The notes under the pieces: model-generated | Told to the model about the DNA's origin: nothing | The model's input: the letters and a program-made list of their open reading frames with translations, nothing else | Database searches by the model: none | NCBI GenBank assembly: GCA_976226885.1 | Contig: OZ320316.1 | Coordinates: 95,294,001-95,358,000 of the forward strand | DNA: 64,000 bases | Direction: 5' to 3' | Source: Iphione sp. A-MEVVRFRX5 | Lineage: Eukaryota | Made by a program: the position numbers and the translations under genes | Part shown: positions 1-46,600 of the stretch, in pieces | Layout: every line of letters begins with the position of its first letter | Numbering within the stretch: the stretch's first letter is position 1

Positions 1-2164
1 TGTTCCTACTCGACATGTCATTGAAGCTCAAATTTACGTCCCTCCCTGAATCATTCATATTCCCGTCATCACGGAAATGCGCCTCGCAGACAGGCGCATA
101 GAGCTTAACGTGGATCACACCATGGAAATTATATAACTCCGTTTCAGTCGTTCCTCTCTCCCCCGCTCCCTTATATTCTCCACCCTCCCACCTTTCGCTC
201 ACTGTCCCCCTCCCTCACCTTGATCCTCCCTTGGTCTCCCTTTCCTTCCTGCCCCCCTTTTACCTGCCATTTATTCACCTCTTTACTAACCCTCCATACC
301 AGTTCAATTCTCCTCTGCTGCTCTCCCTTCACTTTCAACCATCCCCTTCGTTCCTCAAGCACTCGTCTCATGCGCTGCTCCCCTTGACTCCCTTCTGATC
401 TTCACATTTCCTTAGATACTTGACGCACCATTTTTTTCACATGAGGCGTCAAGGTACTTCACCATTTTAGCGGGCGGAGTACTCTTCAAGATCCATCTCT
501 GGATTTTCTGCTATTTGCCACCGTAAAATGGTTACTGCAGACGACGTTCCCTATTTCCACCTGAATATGATGGATGGTCTTCAGTACCATTTACACGCTT
601 GCACAGAGCCGTTTCCAATATACTCTGTATATGTTTTTTTGGAGCAGCCTCCCTGAAACACTAATCAATCTTTAAAAATTCAAATAGTATAAAATGGCTA
701 AGGTGGCATCGTTTATTAATTTGTTGTCTTTATATTCGTAATCATGCTTTGCAACGCAAATGTCGACTGACCGCAGAAGACATCTCTCTTCGTCCGATGC
801 ATTGTCTATAATCTTCCAATAGATTAAGTTTGCGAGGCTTACGAACTGTGTAATAAAACGTTTTAACCAGTGCTAGCGAATCTCCATTCCTACTTATCTG
901 TTATCACTTTAATAAACCACTACTATTATAATATCGGTAGTTCGAGCCTCTTTCTTGTTGCCATTCACCTCGTTTCATGATTTGCAATCCGCTTAAATAT
1001 CGTCTTTTTACCGCAGACGACATTGGACATTTTCCCTCCATACATCAAATCGAAGCTACTCATTCATACTTCAATCCAAGCATCCCTGATCCCATCCATA
1101 CCACAACCCATTAGTAAAGGGATAGTCCTCGGGGACGGACTGGAGTGAAGGGCACATGACCTGGGGTCAAGGCCATTTCAGGTGGTAAACGCTCTATGTA
1201 AACGGCAGTCACCTGACCGGAAGCGCATATCCCATGACTAACATGGCGTCTTGGGCTTCGCCATGGCTCGCGGTGTTATTGCGGCGGGCGATATTGGGAG
1301 AGTTCTAATATTGGCTTGAACCTTTCCTGACCTCCACCAATTCGTTCTGGTCACGTCCTATTTTCCATAAACAAGAAATACTGCGATGCTGTACGGTATG
1401 ACACATGGGATTTCATCTTCATTGCATCTCTTGTTCAACCATGTAGGATATTCTATGACATTTGAAACTGCCATTCTTGACAAGATCACGTCTAGTTTGA
1501 TATAACTTGTCTTTCTACTTCCATTGTCTTGATATTGTTGTAGATTCTTCCCTTTACGACTTGTTTCCCATATGAAATTGAGTACTATCCCCTATATAAC
1601 GTCTTTTCAAATATTAAAGTCAAATATCCGGTATATCTGCAGCCAGCTTTGATACTTTGCCTTAAAAGTTTCCACACGCATTTATATAAATCTACCAATG
1701 AATTGCTTCCTTCGACAGACAATATCTACTGGATTTAGATTTAGGAAAGGACTTGTAGTTTCGGTTAATACATGATTAAACAAGAAGACTTAAGAAAGTG
1801 CATGCCAAACAAAGTCACTGCACAACTATTTATTCTCTTTTTACACGGTGTTTCCTTTGAAGAACAACTAGCATTTGTGATTTAATAAACAATAGGATTG
1901 ATATCCTTTACAACAATGCTTACCCACCTTATCTATAAATACTCTATTGCTCTATTTGTATTCTACGTTATTACAATGACAGCGAATTATATAAAAACCT
2001 TAGTAGCATTGTAGATTCATGGTCCTCGATTGGTATGTATGCTCTCTTTGCCATGTTATAACTATGTACAAGATAGTTGCTCGTCGGGCTGCATGTTCCT
2101 TGCTGATCTATTAGCTTGATGACTGTATTTAGTATATTCGGACATTTAAACTGTTTCAATATAC

Positions 2165-2379
2165 TGTTGTGCGGAGCAGTAATATACTCCGCACCGAGTT
2201 ACTCAGCACGCTGAGCATGTATGTAAGTTACTCCTCACGTTGGCTCCGCACGATATGACTGTATGTATAAAAGCAAGTGCGTGCGGAGTTTAGTTCAGTT
2301 GCGTTCTTACCTCTCAGCAATAAACATCTAAACCTTACTTGGGAGTCTGCCTCCAGTATGTTAAGGTCTGGCCGTAACA
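2165..2379 (+). repeat. 5' LTR (215 bp)
   Basis: Starts TGTTGTGCGGAG, ends GGCCGTAACA; no difference from 10560-10774 found by eye; contains TATAAAA (2266-2272), TCAGTT (2295-2300) and AATAAA (2319-2324). Confidence 0.98.
2264..2300 (+). promoter_or_regulatory. LTR core promoter (TATA + Inr)
   Basis: TGTATAAAA at 2264-2272 and Inr-like TCAGTT at 2295-2300; the Inr A (2297) is 31 nt after the first T of TATA, a canonical spacing; GTGCGGAG lies between them (2281-2288). Confidence 0.75.
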
Positions 2380-2380
2380 T

Positions 2381-2398
2381 TGGTGGCAGCGGTGGGAT
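2381..2398 (+). other. Primer-binding site, tRNA-Leu (AAG/TAG type)
   Basis: TGGTGGCAGCGGTGGGAT, 1 nt after the 5' LTR, is complementary to the metazoan tRNA-Leu 3' end ...ATCCCACCGCTGCCACCA. Confidence 0.92.
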
Positions 2399-3851
2399 GG
2401 ATTCCCCCCTCGCAGACGAAGAACATCGTGGTGCGGAGCTCGGAGCGTGCGGAGGCGTGCGGAGTAGCTCGGCGTGCGGAGCAGCTCAGCGTGCGGAGCA
2501 GGACGAAGGGTCGACTCAGCGTGCGGAGTCCGCTGAGGCCGACGCTGAGCACCCCTGCGCTGAGCCCGCCGAGGCATGGCATGCGGAGCACGCCATGCGG
2601 ACAGGGCACACGGACACCCAGTTGCCCACGGCGGAGCTGCGCACCCCTAGCCTCATTAGCGGGTTCCTGCATGTCGGCGGAGCGGGCGCGGAAGCACAGT
2701 CGCCCGTCGCCACAGCGCGGGTTGCAGTTATCGAAGAACCTGCTAGGGGCCGGGGCCGCACTGGGAAGCGAGGAGGGGCCATCTCACCCATGGCGATGGG
2801 GGCCGGCGAAGGAGGGGTGGCCAAGGGTACGCCAGTTACCCGTGGGGCCCCTCGGACCCCGTCGCAACGGCCAGAATGGAGGAGCGGAAGGACGCAACTC
2901 GAAGAGGACGACTCATCCGACGGAAGCGCAGAGGAGCAGTCGGAGGATGAACTGTCCACGGATGAAGAAGATCGGGAACCGACCTTGGACGGAGAACGAG
3001 GACCGGTGGAGGAACTCGTCGGGGCGTTACGCCAAGCCCTGCAGCCACGGGAGACGCGCCGGCGGGTGCCAGTCAAGCCGGATGTATACGATGGGTCGAC
3101 CCCACTTTCGGATTTCCTGCACCATTATGAGCTGGTCTCTGAGGCCAACAGCTGGACGGGGAGAGAGAAGGCGCTACAGCTGGGGGTGAGCCTCAGGAAG
3201 GCCGCAAGGACCACCCTACGGAATGCTCAAGTGGACATGGAACAGCCCGACGCGTATGAGAGGATCGTGCAGGCTCTGACCGATAGGTTTCAGCCAGCAG
3301 ATCAAGTCGACGCCTACATACAACAACTCAAGTACCGGAGGCAGAAGAAAGAAGAAGGATTGGGGGAGCTGGCTGACGATATCGAGCGGCTGGTGCGCCT
3401 CGCCTATCCGGAGGCCACCGGGCAATGGAAGGATAGGATGTGCAGGGAGTATTTCTTAGGCTCCCTTTCGAATGAGAAAGAACGGAAGTGGGTCACCCAG
3501 GCGAGAGTTTCGACATTCCGGAAGACCGTGTCCGAGGCTCAGCTCGCGGAATCCTACTACAGTAGCAAGAGGGCACGCAACCCGATGAAGGTGCACAAGG
3601 TGGAACAAGTGGAAGACCCCAGCCCGTCGGCCAGGAAGGAGGAGGCCCCTCACTGGCAGCGAATTGAGGAGCTGCTGTCGGCCCTGTTGAAGAAGCAGGA
3701 AGGATCCGGGACTTCATCGCGTTCCCCTTCTGGGAAGAAGGGATGTTACTTCTGCGGCGACCTGACGCATTTCAAGCGGGACTGCCCCAAGTTTGCCGCT
3801 GCGAGACCTGACCAGTCGGGAAACGAAGTGGCGGCCGCTCCCCGGAGGTAG
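2397..3851 (+). CDS. gag: Gag polyprotein with one CCHC zinc knuckle
   Basis: ATG in strong context (gggATGg) at 2397, with an in-frame weak ATG at 2358 in U5; capsid-like start PDVYDGSTPLSDFLHHYELVSEANSW; knuckle CYFCGDLTHFKRDC; stop TAG 3849-3851. Confidence 0.93.
   Translation: MDSPLADEEHRGAELGACGGVRSSSACGAAQRAEQDEGSTQRAESAEADAEHPCAEPAEAWHAEHAMRTGHTDTQLPTAELRTPSLISGFLHVGGAGAEAQSPVATARVAVIEEPARGRGRTGKRGGAISPMAMGAGEGGVAKGTPVTRGAPRTPSQRPEWRSGRTQLEEDDSSDGSAEEQSEDELSTDEEDREPTLDGERGPVEELVGALRQALQPRETRRRVPVKPDVYDGSTPLSDFLHHYELVSEANSWTGREKALQLGVSLRKAARTTLRNAQVDMEQPDAYERIVQALTDRFQPADQVDAYIQQLKYRRQKKEEGLGELADDIERLVRLAYPEATGQWKDRMCREYFLGSLSNEKERKWVTQARVSTFRKTVSEAQLAESYYSSKRARNPMKVHKVEQVEDPSPSARKEEAPHWQRIEELLSALLKKQEGSGTSSRSPSGKKGCYFCGDLTHFKRDCPKFAAARPDQSGNEVAAAPRR
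2431..2682 (+). repeat. (GT)GCGGAG motif array in the gag 5' region
   Basis: GCGGAG at 2433, 2449, 2459, 2476, 2493, 2523, 2583, 2631, 2677 (six as GTGCGGAG), falling in different codon phases. Confidence 0.9.
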
Positions 3852-3864
3852 GGCGAGCGGCCGC
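3818..3864 (+). promoter_or_regulatory. -1 programmed ribosomal frameshift signal (gag-pol)
   Basis: Slippery heptamer G_GGA_AAC (3818-3824) in the gag frame, 6-nt spacer, then perfect 10-bp stem GCGGCCGCTC (3831-3840) / GAGCGGCCGC (3855-3864); the -1 frame is open from the slip site into pol. Confidence 0.88.
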
Positions 3865-6800
3865 GACTCATGCGGACGCAGCCTCGGGCGAGTTGGAAGA
3901 CCACCTGCGGAAGATCGACATCTTGGACGGGAACTGGCAAGAGGTGGTCTTGGAAGGCGATCCCGAGCGGCTTAAACGCGGAATAGTGATTCCGAGTAGG
4001 GTGAGCGGGGTGGAGGCGCAGTGGCTCGTCGACACTGGGGCCTCGCTTACACTCCTTAGTGAGGAGATTGCCCAAGCCGCCGGGATGCAGACGCTGAGCC
4101 CGGTGGAGGGCCGAGTCTTGTGTGCAGATGGAAGCCCGCTTCGAGTGCAAGGCAAGGTGGAGATTCAGGTTGACTTTGGGTCAGTGGAGTTGGAGGTGCA
4201 AGCGCTGGTGGCCAACATAGACTGTGATGCCATTCTCGGTCTCGATATGTTACGACGTTGGTACGCCACCTTGGACATGCGAAATCCCGGTTTGCGGATT
4301 TGGCTACCCCGGACTTCGGCGTGGGAGGAGTGGAAGGTGTGCTTGGTGCAGGACGGAACGGTCAAGGCCAGGAGTGTGGAGAGCGCGGAAGCTGTGATTT
4401 GCGGCGCTGGCAGGATGGACGCGGATATCCTAGTGGAGGGAACCGAAGAGTTCGAGGCTCGGACGGGACTTCGGGTGGCTAGGGCGTTGTGGCCAGCAGG
4501 AGCAAGGAAGGGCACAGTGCAGCTGTTCAACCCTGGAGGGACCGAGCTCCCAGTGCGACAGGGAGCTGTGATCGGAAGGGCGGCAGGGGCGCAGGAAGTG
4601 CAGCCAGGGCCGGGGCCCCGAGGATCGGCACCACGAGTGGCACCACCGGAGCTGATGGACGGACTGCCGGAATCGCTCACTCCAGAGGAACGACAGATGG
4701 TGGAGGGAATGCTCCAAGCCAACGCGGAAGTCTTCCAGAAGGAGGGGGAGCCACTAGGGAGCACGGACTGGCTTTACCATCGCATCGATACACAAGGTCA
4801 CCCACCGATCCGACAGCGGGTGCGGCGGTTGCCCCCGGAGAAGAGGAAGATAGTTCAGGCGGAGGTTGAGAGTATGGTCAAGAAGGGAGTCCTTGAGCCG
4901 TCGACCAGCCCGTGGGCCTCGCCTGTCGTCTTGGTCAAAAAGAAGGACGGGACCTGGCGATTTTGCATTGACTACAGGAGTCTGAATAGGGTAACCAAGA
5001 AGGATGCATACCCACTACCTAGGATCGACGACACGCTGGACGCATTAGAAGGCGCGACCTACTTCTCAGCGATCGACCTGGCTGCCGGGTACTGGCAAGT
5101 ACAACTTGAACCCCAGGACAGGGAGAAGACGGCGGTTTGCACAGCCAGCGGCCTGTACCAGTTTCGGGTGATGCCGTTCGGGCTGTGCAACGCGCCGTCC
5201 ACTTTCGAGCGACTGATGGAAGCCGTACTGCGCGGGTTGGTGGGGCAGACTTGTTTAGTCTACCTCGACGATGTCATCGTCATTGGCCGCACTGTACAGG
5301 AGATGGTGGAGCGCCTGGACCAAGTCTTCGGCCGCCTGACAGCAGCGGGGTTGAAGGTCAAGCCGTCCAAGTGCCAGCTCTTCCGACGGGAGGTGAGCTA
5401 CCTCGGGCACCGGGTCTCCGCTGAAGGAGTGGGACCGGACCCAGCCAAGATCGAGGCCATCCAAGATTGGCCAGCTCCACGCTGTTTAACGGAACTGCGA
5501 AGCTTTGTGGGACTGTGTTCTTACTATCGGAGTTTCGTTCGGGGATTCGCTACCATCACAGCCCCACTCAACGCCCTGCTGGCTAAGGACGCCGAGTACC
5601 GCTGGAGTGAGGACTGCCAGCAGGCCTTCGACGAGCTCAAGCAGAGTCTCACCTCTGCACCAGTCCTGGGCTACCCTAGACCGGAAGGACGGCTTCATCT
5701 AGACACGGATGCCTCGGCCGGAGGGATAGGCGCGGTCCTCTCCCAGGAGCAGGATGGGAAGGAACGGGTGCTGGCCTATGCCAGTCGGACGTTGACTCGC
5801 CCAGAGAAGAACTACTGCGTCACCCGTCGGGAGCTATTGGCGGTCGTCTTTGGGCTTCGCAAGTTCCGGCCGTACCTTGGGGGACAGCATGTGGAGATTC
5901 GCACGGACCACAATTCGCTCAGGTGGTTGTGCAACTTCCGTGAGCCGGAGGGACAACTTGCCCGATGGCTGGAAGAAATCTACACATACGATCTGGATAT
6001 TGTCCACCGCCCGGGAAAACAGCACGGCAATGCGGATGGACTGTCCCGAGTGGAGTGCCCCCAGTGCGGAAGGCGGGAAAGCCCCGGACAAGTGGCGGCG
6101 GTGCGAGGAGCGTCGTCCATGGGCCGGGGGGAGCTCCTGCGGGCACAACAGCAAGAGACGTTGACTAAAGGACTCTTGGAGGCGCTGGAGGAGGGCCGAG
6201 CCGAACCCCCTCCGACCGGACCCGTCACCTGGGAGGAACGACGGCTACTCAGTGAATGGCCCAGACTCTCCGTGAGGGGAGGGCTGCTTCATCGGAGATG
6301 GGAGACGGAAGACGGGAGTCCCCGATTTCAAGTTTACGTGCCCAGGACCCTGCGGCGGTCTTTGTGGCAGGAGGTTCACGCCGGCGCGCTCGGAGGGCAT
6401 CTTGGCAGTCGGAAGACGGAGGGAGCTGTACGGTTGCGTTACTTCTGGCCGGGGCTGACCCGAGACCTGGAGACCTGGGGAAGGGCATGTCCCGAGTGCC
6501 AACAAGTCAAGGACCCGTCCACCAGGAAGAGGGCACCCCTGCAGGGACGAGTAATTCCCGGACCCTGGGAGTTCGTTGCGGTGGATGTGTGCGGACCGTT
6601 CCCCGAGACGCCGCGAGGGAACCGCTACATCATCGTCATCGCTGACCACTTTACCAAGTGGACTGAGGCATTCGCAACCCCTGATGCCACTGCAGAGACC
6701 ACGGCTCGCGTCCTACTCCGAGAAGTCGTCTGCCGTTTCGGACCGCCCCGGACCCTTCACTCAGATCAAGGAAGGAACTTCGAGTCAGCCGTGTTCCGGG

Positions 6801-9800
6801 AACTCCTGTCGCTGCTGGGAATCCAGAAGTCTCGCACTACTCCGTACCACCCTCAGAGTGACGGAGTAGTAGAACGGTTCAATCGTACCCTGGTGAAGAT
6901 GCTAGCGGCCACTGTGGACGAGGACCAGTCGGACTGGGATGAGAGGCTTCCTATGGTGATGGCCGCCTACAGGTCTACCCCCCACCAGGCTACGGGGTAC
7001 ACGCCTAATCTTCTTATGTTGCAGCGAGAGACGACACTCCCCGTAGAACTGCTGTTCGGAGCTCCGGTGGACGCGCCCACACCTCGAGAGGAACTGGTAG
7101 AGACGTGTCGGACGCGGTTGGTGGAGGCTCATGGTCTGGTAAGGAGACGGCTCCAACGGGCGGCCCGCCGTCAGAAGGACTGGTATGATCAAAGGGTGCG
7201 GCCCCAGAGCTACCGAGAGGGAGCACAGGTGTGGTTGTTCTCCCCGGCAAAGACGAAGGGACGATCGCCTAAACTGGAAAAACACTGGTCGGGGCCATGG
7301 ACGGTATTGGCCAGGCTCTCTGAGGTAATCTATCGCCTCAGCCGCGGTAAGAAAAGAAGAGTGGTGCATGCTGACCTGATCAAGCCGATGTTCCCTTCAC
7401 AGGAATCCGTGCAAGTAGAGGGACGAGCCCAGAGCGTGGGTTGGGCCGCGAGGAGAGAGCACGAACCACGGAAAGGAAGTGGCGGCGTCTGGACTCGGTC
7501 AGGGAGCGGCCCCCTGCGGAGCCCGGAAACGCCCTCCGTGCGGAGCACGCCGCAGGCCAATCACCGTCGTGCGGAGTCGCCCCGGAGTCTGTATAAAAAG
7601 GATCGCGTGCGGAGCACGACACTCAGTTCGTCAACTGCAGCCGACCGCGGAGCATCGACCCACGCTGAGCACGCACGTGCGGAGTACGAGCCCTACTCCG
7701 CACCACCTGAGCGCAAGGTACTTAAGGACGAAGTGCGGAGCCCGACGCCCATTCGACTTGCCGCTGCTGACCGGGGAACATCCATCGAGACTACCGTTGA
7801 CGCCGAGCAGGGACGCTGCTCCGCACGTGCGGAGTTAAGACACTACTCCGCACGAGTAGAACACTGGTGTTGCTCCGCACGGACTGAGCTCGCCGACTAC
7901 TCCGCACGGCACGACTCCGCACGGACCCAGCACCGTGACTGCTCCGCACGAACTGGAGGCACCATGGCCGGGTGCAGGTTCCATTGTTCGGAGTGTGACT
8001 ACTCCAGTGACAGGCACGCCAACCTCCTACGCCACCTGGAGGTGCATGGGAACCGGGGATTCGGACGTGTCTGCCCCGCCCCGGAGTGTCATCTCAAAGC
8101 CTTCCGGCGGAGGGATGACTTCCGGCGTCACCTGGAACGGAAGCACTCCGGAGGGGAGGGCCATCCCCTGATGCTGGGGCAGACCGTGGATGTGCAGTAC
8201 CTGGAGTACTCTCAGTCTGCCCCGTTTGTGGCTGTCACGCTGCCGGTACCCGCCGACAAGCAGGAAGAGTTCGAGCGGCTGAAGAAGAAGGAGGAGTATG
8301 AGAGGAGGAAGGAGCTAGCCATCATGAGGGGGGTTGACCCTCCGAGCCCGCCTCGGGGACGACGCCCATCGACCAAGACGCGCCGCCCCAGTGCAGCGGT
8401 GGGGAAGGCCCCTGCTGATGCTCGCCCCCCGGGGGGTGAGGCCGTGACTGGGGGACGGGGAGAGCCGAGGCCCTCAACATCTGGGCAGCCGACAAGCAAG
8501 GATCCTCGGCCGCCCCCGTCTAAACAAGTGACGATCCGAGAGCCAGCCCGGGTAACCACGAGAGAGGCCACCCCAGCGCCTGCGCCACCGCGGCCAGCCG
8601 GACTGCCGCCCAAGGGCCGTCAAGTAGGGGCTCGGCCCACCGCAGCTGAAGCATCTACCCAGCCGAAGGCCCCCCCAGCCGTCCAGCGGCTGGTTACGGC
8701 GGAGACCATTTCCAGTACCGGCTCGCCGACTCCTTCGATGCGTGGAGCCCGCCTGGACGCCGGTACCCCTGGAACGCGGATCCAGCTATGGGGGCTGGAT
8801 CACTCAGCAAACACCACGCCGAGCGACCTGTCCTTGACGCCACAGCTGATCGAGGCGGCCCGACGGAGCGAGATGCGGCAGCGGGAGCGGGCCCGAGGCC
8901 AGGAGGCAGAGCCGCAAGAAGACACCCCGGGGCAGACGAAGCGCCGGCGTTCCGCCTGGGCCTCCCCGCCGGCAGGTTCCCCCCCCACACCGGGGAGGGA
9001 CTGGTCTCCGGCTGAGGGGGGCAAAGACGCTGAGCAGCAGCCACGAGGGAGGAAGAGGACGCCGAGGACCCCGAGGACGATAGCTGCCTCCACTCGGGTC
9101 ACCCGCAGCCAGAGTCGGGCCAGCACTACACCAGGGTCCACCATCACGGATCTCAGCCAGGACGCCAGGGAGGTGGAGAGACGGCTGGGCTTCGCCTGGA
9201 CTCCTGCCCGCCCCACTGAGGTGGTGGTCACTTCCGAGGAGGAAGGAGGGGATGACGGCACGACCGCCGTTGCTGGAGCTCAGGAGGGGCAGAGGGACCC
9301 TCGGGCCTCCACCCCCCTTCCTTCTGCTGGGGCCCAAGCCACCCAAGGGACCCAGCAGGAGGTGCCACCGCCCAGAGGGGCATCTTCGTGCCGTGCTGAG
9401 ACAGGAAGGAAGGTGCCCTCGCCGGTCCAGGAGGAGTGGGTTTACACCGAGGCAGATGAAGCTGGCGACGACGACATGGGGGAGGTCCCAACACTCGAGC
9501 CACCGCAGACCTCCCTGGGCGTCACGGTGTCCACCGTGGACTTTCCGGGGACATCGGAGGATGCCGGCACATCTGGTGGGTCTCAGGCCCCTTCCGCAGG
9601 AGCTGAGGCCGCCCCACCCCCACCTGCTGACGGAGCCCCACAGCGCGAGGAGGCCGAGGAAGCGGTCTCGTCCAGTGGCCACCCAAGTTCAGCGGCTGAC
9701 GAGGAGGAGGAGCACGACGGCGGCCAAGATGAGCGGGGAGACGAGTCTCTACAGCGGCCAACCGAGAATCGTCGCACCACTGTCCGAGGGTCGCCGGTGC

Positions 9801-10117
9801 ACCGCTGGGCCTACCGTCGGCTGTTGGACACGCACGAGCCCCCACCCGAGGGGTGGGAGTGGGTCGCAGCCAACTCTCGGGTCAACTTCGAGCTGGAGGA
9901 GCCGCCGCATCGGGTCACCTTCAGCCACAGAATGGACTTGCGGTCGGAGGCTGAGGGCACCCGCCCTCAGGCGATCGTCGACTGGTATCAGGACCGGCAG
10001 AGCGGGCATCCGTGTCCTCGAGGCCGGCTGGTCCATGAGGAGGCTACCTTGGCGTCGCGGGGGCGTCACAGCTCCTCCCTGTCGGCGGAAGAATCCTTCG
10101 TTCTGCAAGAACCGTGA
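3821..10117 (+). CDS. pol: Pol (protease, RT, RNase H, integrase) with about 900-aa C-terminal in-frame extension
   Basis: PR LVDTGA (D at 4031); RT YLDD (5261-5272); RH DASAGGIGAVL (5708); IN HHCC (6377-6500), D 6584, D 6764, E 6872 (D-35-E), GPY/F-like WSGPW (about 7286-7300); the frame continues without a stop to TGA 10115-10117. Confidence 0.95.
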   Translation, partial: KRSGGRSPEVGRAAATHADAASGELEDHLRKIDILDGNWQEVVLEGDPERLKRGIVIPSRVSGVEAQWLVDTGASLTLLSEEIAQAAGMQTLSPVEGRVLCADGSPLRVQGKVEIQVDFGSVELEVQALVANIDCDAILGLDMLRRWYATLDMRNPGLRIWLPRTSAWEEWKVCLVQDGTVKARSVESAEAVICGAGRMDADILVEGTEEFEARTGLRVARALWPAGARKGTVQLFNPGGTELPVRQGAVIGRAAGAQEVQPGPGPRGSAPRVAPPELMDGLPESLTPEERQMVEGMLQANAEVFQKEGEPLGSTDWLYHRIDTQGHPPIRQRVRRLPPEKRKIVQAEVESMVKKGVLEPSTSPWASPVVLVKKKDGTWRFCIDYRSLNRVTKKDAYPLPRIDDTLDALEGATYFSAIDLAAGYWQVQLEPQDREKTAVCTASGLYQFRVMPFGLCNAPSTFERLMEAVLRGLVGQTCLVYLDDVIVIGRTVQEMVERLDQVFGRLTAAGLKVKPSKCQLFRREVSYLGHRVSAEGVGPDPAKIEAIQDWPAPRCLTELRSFVGLCSYYRSFVRGFATITAPLNALLAKDAEYRWSEDCQQAFDELKQSLTSAPVLGYPRPEGRLHLDTDASAGGIGAVLSQEQDGKERVLAYASRTLTRPEKNYCVTRRELLAVVFGLRKFRPYLGGQHVEIRTDHNSLRWLCNFREPEGQLARWLEEIYTYDLDIVHRPGKQHGNADGLSRVECPQCGRRESPGQVAAVRGASSMGRGELLRAQQQETLTKGLLEALEEGRAEPPPTGPVTWEERRLLSEWPRLSVRGGLLHRRWETEDGSPRFQVYVPRTLRRSLWQEVHAGALGGHLGSRKTEGAVRLRYFWPGLTRDLETWGRACPECQQVKDPSTRKRAPLQGRVIPGPWEFVAVDVCGPFPETPRGNRYIIVIADHFTKWTEAFATPDATAETTARVLLREVVCRFGPPRTLHSDQGRNFESAVFRELLSLLGIQKSRTTPYHPQSDGVVERFNRTLVKMLAATVDEDQSDWDERLPMVMAAYRSTPHQATGYTPNLLMLQRETTLPVELLFGAPVDAPTPREELVETCRTRLVEAHGLVRRRLQRAARRQKDWYDQRVRPQSYREGAQVWLFSPAKTKGRSPKLEKHWSGPWTVLARLSEVIYRLSRGKKRRVVHADLIKPMFPSQESVQVEGRAQSVGWAARREHEPRKGSGGVWTRSGSGPLRSPETPSVRSTPQANHRRAESPRSLYKKDRVRSTTLSSSTAADRGASTHAEHARAEYEPYSAPPERKVLKDEVRSPTPIRLAAADRGTSIETTVDAEQGRCSARAELRHYSARVEHWCCSARTELADYSARHDSARTQHRDCSARTGGTMAGCRFHCSECDYSSDRHANLLRHLEVHGNRGFGRVCPAPECHLKAFRRRDDFRRHLERKHSGGEGHPLMLGQTVDVQYLEYSQSAPFVAVTLPVPADKQEEFERLKKKEEYERRKELAIMRGVDPPSPPRGRRPSTKTRRPSAAVGKAPADARPPGGEAVTGGRGEPRPSTSGQPTSKDPRPPPSKQVTIREPARVTTREATPAPAPPRPAGLPPKGRQVGARPTAAEASTQPKAPPAVQRLVTAETISSTGSPTPSMRGARLDAGTPGTRIQLWGLDHSANTTPSDLSLTPQLIEAARRSEMRQRERARGQEAEPQEDTPGQTKRRRSAWASPPAGSPPTPGRDWSPAEGGKDAEQQPRGRKRTPRTPRTIAASTRVTRSQSRASTTPGSTITDLSQDAREVERRLGFAWTPARPTEVVVTSEEEGGDDGTTAVAGAQEGQRDPRASTPLPSAGAQATQGTQQEVPPPRGASSCRAETGRKVPSPVQEEWVYTEADEAGDDDMGEVPTLEPPQTSLGVTVSTVDFPGTSEDAGTSGGSQAPSAGAEAAPPPPADGAPQREEAEEAVSSSGHPSSAADEEEEHDGGQDERGDESLQRPTENRRTTVRGSPVHRWAYRRLLDTHEPPPEGWEWVAANSRVNFELEEPPHRVTFSHRMDLRSEAEGTRPQAIVDWYQDRQSGHPCPRGRLVHEEATLASRGRHSSSLSAEESFVLQEP
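7516..7947. repeat. GCGGAG/CTCCGC motif array between integrase and the zinc fingers
   Basis: 15 copies: forward 7516, 7540, 7571, 7609, 7647, 7679, 7735, 7829; reverse 7696, 7819, 7846, 7873, 7900, 7915, 7942. Confidence 0.92.
7590..7628 (+). promoter_or_regulatory. Candidate internal promoter duplicating the LTR core promoter
   Basis: TGTATAAAA (7590-7598), gcGTGCGGAG (7607-7614, same +15 offset from TATA as in the LTR) and TCAGTT (7623-7628); the first ATG downstream is 7964. Confidence 0.65.
7964..10117 (+). CDS. ORF3: putative 717-aa C2H2 zinc-finger protein (in frame with pol); not an Env
   Basis: gcaccATGg Kozak context; fingers FHCSECDYSSDRHANLLRHLEVH and VCPAPECHLKAFRRRDDFRRHLERKH (7979-8146); charged helix; long P/S/T/A/E/R low-complexity region; basic clusters TKRRR and RGRKR; Trp-rich C-terminal about 110 aa; no signal peptide or transmembrane segment seen. 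Confidence 0.7.
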   Translation: MAGCRFHCSECDYSSDRHANLLRHLEVHGNRGFGRVCPAPECHLKAFRRRDDFRRHLERKHSGGEGHPLMLGQTVDVQYLEYSQSAPFVAVTLPVPADKQEEFERLKKKEEYERRKELAIMRGVDPPSPPRGRRPSTKTRRPSAAVGKAPADARPPGGEAVTGGRGEPRPSTSGQPTSKDPRPPPSKQVTIREPARVTTREATPAPAPPRPAGLPPKGRQVGARPTAAEASTQPKAPPAVQRLVTAETISSTGSPTPSMRGARLDAGTPGTRIQLWGLDHSANTTPSDLSLTPQLIEAARRSEMRQRERARGQEAEPQEDTPGQTKRRRSAWASPPAGSPPTPGRDWSPAEGGKDAEQQPRGRKRTPRTPRTIAASTRVTRSQSRASTTPGSTITDLSQDAREVERRLGFAWTPARPTEVVVTSEEEGGDDGTTAVAGAQEGQRDPRASTPLPSAGAQATQGTQQEVPPPRGASSCRAETGRKVPSPVQEEWVYTEADEAGDDDMGEVPTLEPPQTSLGVTVSTVDFPGTSEDAGTSGGSQAPSAGAEAAPPPPADGAPQREEAEEAVSSSGHPSSAADEEEEHDGGQDERGDESLQRPTENRRTTVRGSPVHRWAYRRLLDTHEPPPEGWEWVAANSRVNFELEEPPHRVTFSHRMDLRSEAEGTRPQAIVDWYQDRQSGHPCPRGRLVHEEATLASRGRHSSSLSAEESFVLQEP

Positions 10118-10206
10118 GCACGACTTCCCCCCCAGTATAGGGAAGGGGAGAGTTTGATAGGGGCTTGCCCCCCACCTTACATCAGTTTTCAAGTTACAGC
10201 TGGGAG

Positions 10207-10432
10207 CCTGTACTGGCCTCCTCATTACTCTTTGCAGTTCAAGTTTGGCCTGTACTGGCCCCCTTTTTCTTGTTGGGAACCTGTCTTGGTTTCCCCTGTT
10301 ACTAGTTCACTTTGGAGCCTGTACTGGCTCATATGTTGTTGGACCTGTACTGGTCTTTTGCATTTCAAATGTCAGGCACCTGTACTGGTGTCTTTGCCCT
10401 CCCTAGTCAGTAAGCAGAGAAGCCTGTATTGG
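10207..10432 (+). repeat. CCTGTACTGG dispersed repeat in the element 3' UTR
   Basis: Exact copies at 10207, 10249, 10318, 10344, 10379; variants at 10280 (CCTGTCTTGG) and 10423 (CCTGTATTGG). Confidence 0.9.
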
Positions 10433-10559: not shown

Positions 10560-10774
10560 TGTTGTGCGGAGCAGTAATATACTCCGCACCGAGTTACTCA
10601 GCACGCTGAGCATGTATGTAAGTTACTCCTCACGTTGGCTCCGCACGATATGACTGTATGTATAAAAGCAAGTGCGTGCGGAGTTTAGTTCAGTTGCGTT
10701 CTTACCTCTCAGCAATAAACATCTAAACCTTACTTGGGAGTCTGCCTCCAGTATGTTAAGGTCTGGCCGTAACA
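10560..10774 (+). repeat. 3' LTR (215 bp)
   Basis: Direct repeat of 2165-2379, preceded by the PPT and followed by TSD ATAC; AATAAA at 10714-10719. Confidence 0.98.
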
Positions 10775-11107
10775 ATACCTTTTTAACAGTTATTTTCTAT
10801 TTGCACCGCTTATGTCATTTAGTGCAACATATGCATACTTAGGAATTAGCAAGTGTAACTCCTCAGCCATTATTGAGGAAATTTGGTCAATGTACAAACC
10901 ACAGAGAAGCAGGTGGTTATTTCTACTCAGTTTGGCGGCCGTAATGAGGCAACATTGATTAAAATGGTCTAGACTCCCTGTACAGACATTATCATTATTA
11001 AAGAAACACAACAACGCTATATTAACTATAAGCATTAGCACCATATTACTCATTAGTGATTGGTTACAATGTTGTAACAATAAGACAAATTATGACAGAA
11101 TTATGAT

Positions 11108-40653: not shown

Positions 40654-43600
40654 TTACCTACGAACAGCTTTAATTTTATATTTTGGAATGTCAATATCAA
40701 CTGTGGCTGCATAATTTCTTGGGTCTGAATCAGGAAGCTCATCTTGTGATTCTGGCAGAAGTTGAAAGTTTTGAATGAGTGAGGTCAGCAGTAGGAAGAG
40801 ACGATTCCTGGCAAAGTTCTCACCTGGACACACTCGACGACTACCACCAAATGGAAGTAGCCTACAATGATAAAATATATATTTAAATTACCTTTCAGAA
40901 ACACATACTCTATTTATAATCTACTTGTATTTATCTTTAAAGTAAAATACAAGTTACCTTTTCCTGTTGATGTGATCTGGTGAAACTAGTTGTTTATTTC
41001 TGTCTAGAAACCTCTCAGGTTGAAATGACCATGGTTCATCCCAGTAGTCTTCACTGTGGTGCAGATTCCATAGATTCATAAGGACCTAAAAACATCAATA
41101 CATCAATAATATTGAATGACAAGTTTGCTCAGAAGCTTTGTTACTACTAATGAAGCAAAAAACATTAATTTGAAATCATTTTACTGATTGATATGTATAG
41201 TTATGATTCGGTAACTGGACAACTACCATTCCTACTGAAATCATCCCAATATTGGATAATCCAGTAATAGAACGAAGTGCACATGTGTCTCCTGTTTCGG
41301 AAATCTTGGACAATAGTAAACTATGGGTGAATTATCACAATGAAAATGAACATTTGGAAAATGAACAAAATGGACTTAAATTAGTTATAAATGGCTCAGA
41401 AGCATCTCCTAGTGGGGAAATCTTGCATGAAAGTAAAGTATGGGTGAATTATCAGAATGAAAATATTTATTTCTAAAATAATATAGTAAGAATGCTTGAC
41501 TTATAATATGATTTATTGCAGGCAAGATTGTAAACAAACTAGGCGATTGATCACGCCTGTGCAGCACTTTTGCATGATTTGTACTGTAGTCTAGGAGTAC
41601 AAGCTATATGACTATCATCATACTATGTTCGCTAAAGTAAATGATGTAAGCTTGGGGATATATCGTGCATAAGTAGGGGGGCAGAAGAAATCCAGAGGGG
41701 TCTGCAGTCTTATTCAATTGTCATCGCCTGATTACGTTGATGTTAATATGTGGTTTATTGGGAAGGGTAATGTGCGTTGGCCGACCGTCTGTCACTTGTG
41801 ATTTCAAATGCTGTTCGTTGATTATTACAGGAGTGCAATATCAAAGTAACCAGCTGGGTAGGTGCTAATCTATGGGGTACTACTATCCACGGATCGCCTT
41901 ATCAGATTGAATAAACGTTGTGAAAATACGGGGTATAGTAATAGTTCTTTACTGACCGCTAACCAGATAACCTGCATGTACTTATGTCTGCTACACTACA
42001 CTGTGTGGAAGTATAAGATCAACCACCTGATTGCACTATCTAACATACTAAACATGGGAATAAGAAATAGAGGGTGGGAGAGCCTGTGTGAATGTGTTTG
42101 ACTAACACCGTGGTTAGAAAATATTATGGTGAGGAGCCAGGATTTGATCATCGAAACAATACTAAATTAATAACATCTAAACTGCACAAAATGAAAGGAG
42201 TTAACCTTCTATTATATAATATAAGGAGCCTCAGGGGCAAAATTGATGCCTTCAGGGTGCAAATGGCCAGCAAATCGGCACACATTTGCATCCTAACCGA
42301 GACATGGCTTAACAGCACACATTCAGACGGAGAGGTGTCGGTGCCAGGTTTCAGGATATTCCGTGCTGATAGGGTGTGCCATCACAAGCAGAGAGGTGGA
42401 GGATTAGCAATCTACATCAGAGATGACATCAGAATCATCAAGGCGATCAACTTCAACATTGAAGACAGCGAGTGTGAGTGCATGGGGCTGTTGATTAAAT
42501 TTGGGATGAGGCGCCCACACTTAATCGTGGGTGTGTACAGACCGCCGCATGATCGCATGAGAGATTCGATCCGTGAACTTGAGAAGGTCTTATGTGAAGC
42601 AGTAAAGCATGGACGATGTGATGTCACCATAGCAGGAGACTTGAATTTTGACTACCTCGGTAATGAGAGAGCCGGCACAGGGATTACCCACCTCCTTGCG
42701 AGTTACGGTTTCAGCCAAGTGGTGCAGGAGAGCATGATGGTGGCCACTGATCACTGTCTGGACCAGGTCTGGATAAACTACCGAGGGAAGGTGGAGGCCG
42801 ATACACTAGGATGGACGTTAAGCGACCACTTGCCTGTGAAGATCTGTATCAAGAAAAGTAGTCCCAAGAAGAAAATGGTTCAAAAGGAGATAAGGCAATG
42901 GTGGAAAGTAGACATTGACGCACTGGACCAAGAACTACATCAAGAGGGAATCCACTGGAACAGGGACGCAGCTACAGCGTGGGATGAGTTTGCAGATCGG
43001 GCAAAATCTATCCTAAAAAAGACGTGTCCAAGAAAGACAATTAAAGTAAGTAGGGACACAGATGGCTTTCGACCAAGTGATGAAACGCTGGAGCTCATTG
43101 CGGACAAAGCCTACTACTTGAGAAAATGGAAGACTGAGAAATGCATTGATGCATTCAGGATTTTCAAATTCTTGAACAAGTCAGTTAGGCGCGCAATTAC
43201 AGCAGACAGGAAACGCTACTGGGAGTCAAAGCTACAGGAAGCAGGGAAAAATACGTCGAAACTGTGGGATGTTATGAATGAAGCACTTGGTAGAAAACAT
43301 GGCCAGATGGTACTACTGGAGGCCACCTCCATATGCACCTCCACAGAAGAGAAGGTGGCTGACCAATTCAATAGGAACAAACCAAGCTCACTGGATGTTG
43401 CATCAGGTCGCAGAGGTAACACCTTCGATGGACAGCTGCCAGGGCCCGCAGGGCTAAGACCCTTAGTCGCGAGGCTCAACACAGCTAAAGCACTGGGGGT
43501 GGAGGGAATTCCATCAAGAATCCTCAAACTGCTTCTGCTCAAGAATCTGGACTTCCTACACTGGATTTTTGAGAAAATTGTGGATTCTGGTAAATATCCG

Positions 43601-46600
43601 GACACCTGGAAATTGGCAAGGGTGACGCCTCTCCACAAGAGAGGGGACACAAACGTCCTGGGAAACTATAGACCCGTCTCGATTTTGCCTTTGCCAGGCA
43701 AAATCTTCGAGCGGTGGTTTGTCAGCAATATTACGCGTCACCTAGAGGAGCGGAGGTTCATCAGCGAGAAGCAACATGGGTTCAGGAAAGGACGCAGTAC
43801 AGAGACGGCAATAGTGTCCCTGGTAGGTAACATCTATGAAGCGACGAATGCCGGACTGTACTGCTGCCTCCTGGCATTCGACATGAGGAAGGCATTTGAT
43901 CTGGTGCCTTCCTCAGGTGTCGTTAAAAGATTTAAGTTAGCAGGAGCGAACACGAGAGTGTGCAGACTAGTGGAGAATTACTTCTACAACAGAAGACAAT
44001 TCGTCTACTGTCTTGAAGAGAAATCGAGCACAAGAACTATTGAACACTGAGTTCCGCAGGGCTCCGTGTTCGGTCCAACAGCCTTCTGCTTAGTGATCGA
44101 TGAACTCATGGACCATCTACCAGAGTTCTGTCATGCAGCACTTTATGCAGATGATCTGTTAATCATTGTGAAGGCCAAAGATCTGTTGCGCCTGCAGAGC
44201 GCCTGTCAACACACTGTCACATTGGTGGCCAACTGGTGCGCCACTACAGGTCTGCTTCTGTCTGAGGGCAAGTGCTGCTATATGCCAATTAGCAAAGCAG
44301 CGGGCACACCACTTGACATTAAGGCAAACGGGCTGGAGCTATCTATGGTAACGCATCTGCAGCTTCTCGGGTACCACCTGGATGCACGCTTGAGCATGCG
44401 GGAAGCCATGAAGGATGTGAAGAGGAAAATGTGGAATACATCGCTGAAAATTGCAAGGATCAAGAGGTAACTACCATGGAGAGTATGTACAAAGCTGTTC
44501 AAGGCCCTAGTCCTACCACATCTACAATATGAAGCCATACTGATGTACGGAGGTGCCAAAGCCATTATGCTCAACTTGCAAATCCATCTAATCCGTTGCA
44601 TTCGGCTCTGTCTGCAGACAAGAGCAAACATGACTGTCAAGACAATCTGCAGTCGGATGGGTATCAGCCGTGTTGAGGAAATGACGCACAAAAAAGCTAT
44701 GGAAGCAGTACATCGTCAAGTAAAACTGGGGCTCTGGAAGATGGACAAACACTCAAAAACAAGAGGTGGCAGCTCACTACGCATCAAGGTAGACAGGCCA
44801 AAGAGCAAAGTCTTCAAAAGAAGCCTGAGATACACGGCAGCAGTTCAATGGAACGAGTTGCCTGACATTCTCAAAAGGATGGATGTACTGAGGCTCTGAG
44901 AAATGATCAGCGGACAACCACAGATTGCAATTAAGCTGGCAAAATGGCTTATAGCAACGCTGTAACACCGTGCATGGGAAACTAGGCACACAGTGGGAAC
45001 TTATAACCGGCTACAAAACTGAATGGCTAATATATATGCACTAACTGTTTACATAAGAACGCTAATTGTTTAGCTAACTGTTTAGCCAGCTGCTACCTAA
45101 CACACCACTACCCTTGCGCACAACGGTGATGGCAAACAATTGGGGAGCCATATGGAAGTACAATATCGCCCACAAGATGGTCCTCGGAAGGGCTTTAGAA
45201 GGGTCAAGCTAGAGTATTGTACTGGGTGTTTACTAGAATATTAGTGGTCAGGTGCTAAGTAGGCTCCTGCCGATGGGTCCCCAGGAAAGCGCACAACCAA
45301 GAGTCACTATATTTGCCCCAATATTTGATCCAGTGCATTCAAAAAGAGTCATGAACATCAAGTGCAACAGTCTTCATTGTGGTAATGCCAAGTCTGCTCT
45401 TGTTCTATATGCCTACCAGTTACAACCAGTGCTCAGTTGAAATTGGAGATGTTTCATGTGATATACAGTAATTTCAAATTCAATAACATAGCTGTACATA
45501 CCGAATGAAGGATCATTGTTGTCGGTTTCAATTATTACACTACTCAATGTAACGTCAGACAATTAGCTGTGACAATCATGTAACTTTAAGAGGAAACACA
45601 CCACGTTTAATTGTCCAAGGAAACCTTTGTAACTCGATGAAGATTGGTCAATAAAGCATTGAATTGAATTGAAAATTAACAAAATGCACTCAAATCAGTT
45701 ATGAATGGTTCAGAAGTCATTATGTAAGTTCTATCTCCTCCTCTGGTCTGGGCCTCATGTAAGAGTCCTCAAAGGAAGTGCACTAACTCTACACCCTTAT
45801 TGTCCTCATAATCCCTCACTAGAAGATCCCCTGATCTAGTGAAATCTTCATGGTGACCTGAGGTTGTGGCATCTTTTGTGTGTCTGCACATTGTCAAGCA
45901 TATCTTCAGGGTCCTGCATCATCTCAGGATCTCTCACTAGAGACAGCAGTGCATTATAGGTGTGTTTCCCTATGATCACTGTGGTGTAGTCCACCTCTGT
46001 GTATATTTTGGCTGACATCAACACTTGAGAATCTCCAGATGGCAGTGACTGGAGAAGGGTCTGGAGCTCAGATAGAGGCATGTCCTCCTCTTCATTCTCC
46101 CCTTCCCTCACAGGTCTGGATGTCTAAGGTAGGATGTTCTGGATGGTGGTGGAGATGACTGCCTGCCAAGCCTCATCCTTCCAGAAACCTACAGTCATGA
46201 GCATGTCCTCCACACACCCCACAAACTGCCTGACCAGCCTATTCATATACAGGGCCTTGAAGGAGGCAATGATCCCAGCATCAAGAGGCTGGATGTAGTA
46301 TGTGGTGTTGGGAGGTAGGTTCTTCAGGGTGATGATCTGTGGCTGCCAGCATTGTTACACAGGAGGATGTGGTCTCTCCCTTGTGCGTTAGCCCTGGTGT
46401 CCATCCAGCCCTTCTGGTTATGCTTGTAATAGGAATACATTCCAGTGTCAAAAGTCTTTCCAAAGCATCTGGGTTTTGCTTCCCTTCCTATCAGGAAGGT
46501 CCTCAATTTATCACTTCATGTTACATTGCAACCAGTTGTGATATTTATCCTATCTTTGCCCTTTTTTCACCCCTTTACTGGCCTAGTGGAGAGGGTAGCT

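Follow-up and report, generated by a model that had tools for sequence, protein, structure and literature searches.

A conserved internal promoter-like module upstream of the zinc-finger gene of a young Ty3/Gypsy retrotransposon

Internal promoters that express a regulator are a hallmark of complex retroviruses, namely the foamy viruses (Spumaretrovirinae), in which a second Pol II promoter embedded in upstream coding sequence drives the tas/bel genes, whereas they are hardly documented in LTR retrotransposons. In the Copia-type element Ty1, an internal start site within the coding region yields a 5'-truncated RNA (Ty1i) encoding p22, a copy-number-control protein that corresponds to the C-terminal, in-frame part of Gag. 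Among Ty3/Gypsy elements, chromoviruses carry a chromodomain fused in frame to the C-terminus of the integrase, and third ORFs downstream of pol, such as env of the errantiviruses gypsy and ZAM or the CERV accessory ORFs of Cer1, are expressed from spliced LTR transcripts (CERV: PMC10309623), which is the usual route for third ORFs in Gypsy-like elements and retroviruses. Our literature searches found no Gypsy element with a promoter-driven zinc-finger gene. Here we analyzed a Ty3/Gypsy element located in a 64,000-nucleotide stretch of contig OZ320316.1 of Iphione sp. A-MEVVRFRX5 (GCA_976226885.1), hereafter the window, for which a preliminary description had proposed, inside pol, an internal promoter that copies the LTR promoter, points at a zinc-finger ORF and follows a spumavirus-like logic.

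The window holds a complete element of 8.6 kb (Table 1), with two LTRs (TG...CA) flanked by a target-site duplication and protease, RT, RNase H and integrase domains in that order, as identified by Pfam. The identical LTRs point to a very recent insertion. A TGG-initiated stretch follows the 5' LTR. The homologues of Pol are named 412, Ty3 or K02A2.6-like, and the best matches are Gypsy elements of arachnids and other animals. The element is about 60-68% G+C, in a genome of 1.18 Gb with roughly 35% G+C, and this genome holds at least 236 candidate copies of the linker region between integrase and the zinc-finger gene (ORF3), of which the 40 that were scored are 94-100% identical. ORF3 has only C2H2 hits in Pfam. 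An exhaustive phmmer search of 1.84 billion representatives gave one weak finger match, and an Atlas feature search with the C-terminal 128 residues gave nothing. A search of the whole window against Rfam returned no family.

Table 1. Positions of the features of the element in the window (position 1 is the first letter of the 64,000-nucleotide stretch; promoter positions such as -68 are relative to the inferred start sites)
Positions	Strand	Feature	Basis
2161..2164	.	Target-site duplication ATAC, 5' copy; the 3' copy is at 10775-10778	Read directly
2165..2379	+	5' LTR (TG...CA), identical to the 3' LTR	219-nt repeat reported at 100% identity; ends read directly
2264..2300	+	LTR core promoter: TGTATAAAA at 2264, TATA T 2266, GTGCGGAG 2281 (-16), initiator TCAGTT 2295 (inferred start A 2297); further sites at -128, -110 and -53	Motif searches; conserved in the LTRs of older subfamilies
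2431..2528	+	Six direct GTGCGGAG sites in the LTR-driven leader / start of the gag frame, read in all three frames, so a nucleic-acid motif	Motif search; frames read directly
2397..3851	+	gag (CCHC knuckle); first in-frame ATGs after the LTR at 2397 and 2577; stop TAG at 3849-3851	Open reading frames, Pfam
3818..3824	+	Candidate -1 frameshift heptamer G GGA AAC in the gag/pol overlap (3812-3851), followed by a GC-rich inverted repeat	Read directly; inference only
3812..7390	+	pol: protease, RT, RNase H, integrase including the p58 C-terminal domain	Pfam; homologues 42-57% identical
7391..7963	+	Linker in the pol/ORF3 frame: no stops, no constraint at the amino-acid level, length kept to multiples of three	Comparison of copies
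7514..7693	+	Island conserved at the nucleotide level that holds the predicted internal promoter	Sliding conservation profile; no codon bias
7557..7561	+	CCAAT box at -68, the only CCAAT in the element	Motif search; conservation
7569..7576	+	GTGCGGAG site at -56; further sites at -87 (7538) and -111 (7515, 7-mer)	Motif search; conservation
7590..7598	+	TATA box (TGTATAAAA), with its T (7592) at -33	Motif search; conservation
7605..7614	+	GCGTGCGGAG site at -18 (GTGCGGAG at 7607), between TATA and the initiator	Motif search; conservation
7623..7628	+	Initiator TCAGTT; inferred start at A 7625	Motif search; conservation (the CA is invariant in the linker alignment)
7625..7963	+	Predicted 339-nt ATG-free leader holding 3 plus-strand and 7 minus-strand GTGCGGAG sites; minus-strand sites spaced 27/27/27/15/27 nt	Motif search
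7964..10117	+	ORF3, 717 codons: two C2H2-type fingers at the N-terminus, a low-complexity middle, and a C-terminal ~110 aa that look highly similar between families A and C by eye; under purifying selection	Pfam, translation, codon-position analysis; conserved start codon
10546..10559	+	Polypurine tract next to the 3' LTR	Read directly
10560..10774	+	3' LTR with AATAAA at 10714; the predicted subgenomic RNA, 7625 to about 10735, is about 3.1 kb	Repeat comparison; read directly

The observation in the preliminary description was confirmed, and every coordinate it gave is correct. In both the LTR and the internal module, GTGCGGAG lies at +15 from the TATA T, and TCAGTT follows at +29 in the LTR and at +31 in the internal module, so that the inferred start A is 31 and 33 nt downstream of the TATA T, respectively. 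The LTR 11-mer CACGCTGAGCA (2207-2217) recurs at 7661-7671. As described, no ATG occurs between the proposed start and the ORF3 ATG, which sits in the context gcaccATGg; in fact, the ATG-free run extends from 7388 to 7964 and, at 576 nt, is the longest inside the element. However, two corrections were required, namely that the module lies after the integrase domains, in a linker rather than in pol proper, and that ORF3 shares a single open frame with pol (3893..10117), which had been overlooked.

To assess whether the resemblance could be due to chance, we searched the window for the composite of TGTATAAAA, six bases, GCGTGCGGAG, six to eight bases and TCAGTT. The composite matched 3 times, in the two LTRs and at 7590-7628, against 0 in 100 dinucleotide-preserving shuffles. 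TATAAA occurs only 3 times in the element, in the LTRs and in the internal module, and the CCAAT lies 35 nt upstream of the internal TATA. Furthermore, GTGCGGAG has 28 hits in the window against 0.63 expected, and 27 of them lie in the element, clustered in the LTRs, in the LTR-driven leader and at 7538-7949. The motifs are short and the element is rich in the GCGGAG word, but given these counts and the conservation described below, a chance resemblance or an inert relic of an LTR fragment appears highly improbable.

To determine whether the module is conserved, we performed a six-frame search of the same genome with the first 90 residues of ORF3, which recovered three groups: about 75 copies of the family of the window element (family A) at 87-100% identity together with a few decayed copies at 73-83%, a large second family at 63-64% identity (family C), and one old autonomous copy at 76% identity (D). 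Family C is a non-autonomous derivative. Its LTR matches that of family A closely over the stretch read and its gag protein is 95% identical, whereas the protease is 47% identical, RT, RNase H and integrase are absent, and ORF3 is 49% identical; a single 1350-codon frame runs from the protease to the end of ORF3. Family A, the family C copy C2, X65 (a relative of C), D and the 65-90% identical subfamily copies that still span the module all keep the same order of elements, namely CCAAT, a GCGGAG site, TATA, a GCGGAG site at +15 from the TATA T and an initiator CA. Two further old copies carry private deletions there. There is no gap from CCAAT to the initiator, whereas the flanks need many gaps.

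A sliding conservation profile showed a dip just after integrase (0.54-0.65), the island (0.77-0.84) and a less conserved leader (0.63-0.76). Element by element, conservation was 0.96 for CCAAT, 0.91 for TATAAA, 0.92-0.94 for three GCGGAG sites and 0.95 for the initiator, compared with 0.69 for the 50 spacer positions between them, 0.62 for integrase third-codon positions and 0.71 for ORF3 third-codon positions. Note that the compared lineages all come from one genome and are related, so that the conservation values are not independent samples. Differences at codon positions 1, 2 and 3 numbered 133/115/318 in integrase and 111/57/328 in ORF3, but 144/122/155 in the island and 230/224/276 in the leader. 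The island is therefore conserved as nucleic acid rather than as peptide, and we know of no function other than that of a promoter that would select for exactly CCAAT, TATA and initiator elements at canonical spacing. By contrast, ORF3 is under purifying selection, its shared variants falling at codon positions 1, 2 and 3 in the numbers 14/22/57. CpG retention in old copies, considered as a proxy for germline hypomethylation of the island, was uninformative (0.44, against 0.38-0.47 in the integrase, leader and ORF3 stretches and 0.22 in the poorly aligned stretch just after integrase).

The module is not a recent copy of the LTR promoter. The LTRs of older subfamilies keep TGTATAAAAGCAAG followed by the site and TCAGTT, whereas their internal modules read CTATATAAG, as in family C. 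Thus, the 9-mer shared by the LTR and the internal module in family A is a derived state, and the module is an old, independent one with the same architecture.

The ORF3 ATG, with A at -3 and G at +4, is invariant in 14 of 14 aligned copies, while the 30 nt preceding it vary. Most upstream ATGs in decayed copies sit in a CATG context consistent with CpG decay of CACG. Family C has one upstream ATG in its leader; the corresponding upstream ORF ends on the TGA inside ATGATG, but this is not counted as evidence because the 3-periodic repeats place all TGAs in one frame. The predicted leader is GC-rich and strongly folded (-132 kcal/mol), which does not favour scanning. The z-scores of the predicted leader (-1.96) and the LTR leader (-1.19) are both marginal and do not discriminate. 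A pattern search for polyadenylated retrocopies that would mark transcript ends gave 0 hits, and initiation at 7625 is inferred from sequence alone. Production of the ORF3 mRNA by splicing of the LTR-initiated transcript, with an acceptor in the linker, is not excluded on present evidence but appears very unlikely: no conserved AG or pyrimidine tract precedes the ATG, the CAG at 7640 is not conserved in family C, and splicing would leave the promoter footprint unexplained.

To better understand the shared frame of pol and ORF3, we compared the linker among copies. At least 21 family A copies keep a 2000-2109-codon open frame, and many family C copies keep 1350 codons. Stops per frame were 0/3/8 in the linker of family A and 0/13/12 between the protease and ORF3 of family C, where 375 codons remain open. 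Lineage-level indels in the linker net to multiples of three: those with a clean shared placement are 21, 12, 12, 6 and 15 nt, some of them upstream of the start site, and where the aligner split an event, the pieces sum to a multiple of three. Nine of twelve old copies differ from the window copy in linker length by a multiple of three, the three exceptions carrying private deletions, and C2 and X65 differ by 21 and 27 nt. Thus, selection keeps integrase (or, in family C, the protease-bearing remnant), the linker and ORF3 in one frame, and ORF3 is probably also made as a C-terminal extension of Pol, for which the candidate heptamer in the gag/pol overlap would provide the frameshift. Expression of ORF3 as part of Pol, if it were the only route, had been named beforehand as an outcome that would refute the internal-promoter proposal.

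Frame conservation shows that a promoter is not needed to make the ORF3 protein. In a fusion-only model, ORF3 would be made solely as the C-terminal part of Gag-Pol and perhaps released by the protease, and the island would have another role, such as an array of binding sites for the fingers or an RNA signal, in line with the GCGGAG sites that fill the whole linker and are also present in the LTR-driven leader. We consider this model unlikely, because it explains neither why CCAAT, TATAAA and the initiator in particular are conserved at canonical spacing while the spacers drift, nor the invariant Kozak ATG and the ATG-free run ending at it. Conversely, ORF3 could be expressed only from the subgenomic RNA, with the continuity with pol tolerated but without function. 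The lack of amino-acid constraint in the linker is compatible with this possibility, as is another Gypsy family in the same genome (family B; C10:77.03 Mb; loci L033, L031 and L032), with a 41% identical pol and a two-finger ORF3 about 4 kb past the pol stop. However, without selection the linker frame should have acquired stops and indels that are not multiples of three, and the promoter-only model appears more doubtful still. Family B was dropped as a comparator, because tblastn found no similarity between its ORF3 and that of the window element, there is no TATA, and no clear recurring LTR motif was found upstream of its ORF3. Similarly, in the contig (L053) of the closest foreign Pol (P0003, 57% identical), pol ends with a stop, and tblastn with ORF3 found no match.

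Neither single model explains both data sets, and the simplest reading is dual use, which we favour with moderate confidence. In this view, the island is a functional RNA polymerase II promoter embedded in an open reading frame, from which a subgenomic mRNA would start near 7625 with the ORF3 ATG as its first ATG, and the same DNA would be read by ribosomes as an unconstrained spacer that keeps ORF3 in frame with integrase, so that ORF3 is additionally made as the C-terminal part of Gag-Pol after -1 frameshifting. The sequence architecture, its selective conservation and the conservation of the frame are established by the present analysis, whereas transcription initiation itself, the use of both routes, and any binding of the ORF3 fingers to the GCGGAG sites of the two promoters or activation through them are inferences. 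The interpretation offered in the preliminary description is therefore only partly supported: the promoter-like module, its leader and start codon hold up across diverged lineages, but the derivation from the LTR promoter does not, and the Tas-like positive feedback remains a hypothesis. Reading the helix positions of the two fingers by the canonical C2H2 recognition code points to GCG-GAG, the core of the repeated motif, and the same helix residues appear in family C, which would fit a self-encoded factor acting on both promoters. However, a site centred at -18, between TATA and the initiator, could repress as easily as activate.

A more far-reaching, tentative possibility is that this is a complex Ty3/Gypsy family carrying its own sequence-specific zinc-finger regulator, expressed from the internal promoter and acting through GCGGAG sites at matching positions (about -110, -55 and -17) in both promoters, thereby forming a feedback circuit shared by an autonomous family and its abundant non-autonomous partner. 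That the partner keeps the promoter module and ORF3 while having discarded RT and integrase points to the regulator being important for amplification. If transcription from 7625 is confirmed, this family would show that retrovirus-like regulatory complexity arose independently in a retrotransposon, and would be a tractable case of DNA serving both as promoter and as coding spacer.

Compared with the foamy viruses, the element shares a putative second Pol II promoter inside upstream coding sequence, aimed at an accessory, putatively regulatory gene at the 3' end, with recognition sites shared in kind with the LTR promoter. However, it is a Ty3/Gypsy retrotransposon without env, its ORF3 shows no similarity to Tas, has no homologue among the representatives searched apart from the weak finger match and so is not a member of any Tas family, ORF3 is in frame with pol, and activation by the product is only inferred. 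Ty1 provides a formal precedent for one frame with two expression routes, but its product is a Gag fragment rather than an added, predicted DNA-binding gene, and no canonical CCAAT/TATA/initiator module shared with the LTR is involved. As in chromoviruses, an extra, putatively nucleic acid-binding module is joined in frame to the integrase C-terminus, although here the addition is a 717-codon ORF with its own conserved start codon and promoter-like module. Moreover, the insertion site of the window copy, in AT-rich DNA, shows no GCGGAG in the flanks read, so that site-directed integration by the fingers is not indicated. Finally, like the errantiviruses and Cer1, the element carries a third ORF downstream of pol; in contrast to their spliced transcripts, no conserved acceptor was seen in the linker examined here, and a conserved promoter-like module is present.

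In the same genome, we identified a roughly 6.3-kb non-autonomous partner of the window's element, denoted family C, represented by about 70 or more copies, including those at the loci L038, L034+L035, L039 and L040. The gag protein of family C is 95% identical to that of the window's element, and its LTR matches closely where it was read. The protease is 47% identical, and RT, RNase H and integrase are absent. Family C keeps an unknown ~380-codon middle region, the internal promoter module and ORF3, all in one 1350-codon frame. Furthermore, the family C leader has one upstream ATG, which opens an ORF of 63-65 codons in copy C2 and likewise in C1, C4 and X65, a relative of family C. This ORF ends on the TGA inside the ATGATG at the ORF3 start, yielding a stop/start overlap, although this overlap may simply follow from the 3-periodic repeats.

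Inspection of the window's element itself revealed a G GGA AAC slippery heptamer in the gag/pol overlap. The heptamer is followed by two GCGGCCGC words that can pair, which makes it a candidate -1 frameshift signal. In addition, repeated words were found in three other regions of the element. The LTR-driven leader carries six GUGCGGAG words, whereas the linker carries seven copies of the complement, CUCCGCAC, spaced 27/27/27/15/27 nt, and the same arrangement is present in family C. In RNA, these words could pair over 5 kb or between genomic and subgenomic RNAs. About seven copies of a CCTGTACTGG-like word lie in the 3' untranslated region, between the ORF3 stop and the polypurine tract.

Features and their locations in the window and at other loci of the same genome
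Location	Strand	Feature
window 2431-2528		GUGCGGAG words in the LTR-driven leader
window 3812-3880		Region of the candidate -1 frameshift signal in the gag/pol overlap
window 3818-3824		Slippery heptamer G GGA AAC
window 7696-7949		CUCCGCAC words in the linker
window 10200-10420		CCTGTACTGG-like words in the 3' untranslated region
window 10775-10778		Sequence directly after the 3' LTR end
L054, L055, L058		3' LTR ends of further copies
window 42092-44470		LINE-type ORF
L038	minus	Family C copy
L038 (C2 4817-5008)	minus	Upstream ORF in the family C leader
L034+L035, L039, L040		Family C copies
L041-L052 and L036		Old copies with CpG decay
L033+L031+L032 (C10:77032783-77044294)		Family B element

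We examined the 3' LTR ends of four independent copies, namely, the copy in the window and those at L054, L055 and L058. In each case, ATAC or ATAT directly follows the LTR end, which suggests a preferred ATAY target site. The old copies, when compared with the window, show heavy CG to TG/CA decay, with 39-54% of the CpG sites of the reference copy reading TG or CA. This indicates germline methylation of these elements in the host.

Two other types of elements were also observed. The window contains a LINE-type ORF with an apurinic-endonuclease-like domain and reverse transcriptase. A further family, family B, is an 11.5-kb Gypsy element with 586-bp LTRs full of TGATTGG (inverted CCAAT) words. 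It has a 54-bp tandem array after pol, minus-strand ORFs, and a two-finger ORF3 located 4 kb beyond the pol stop.
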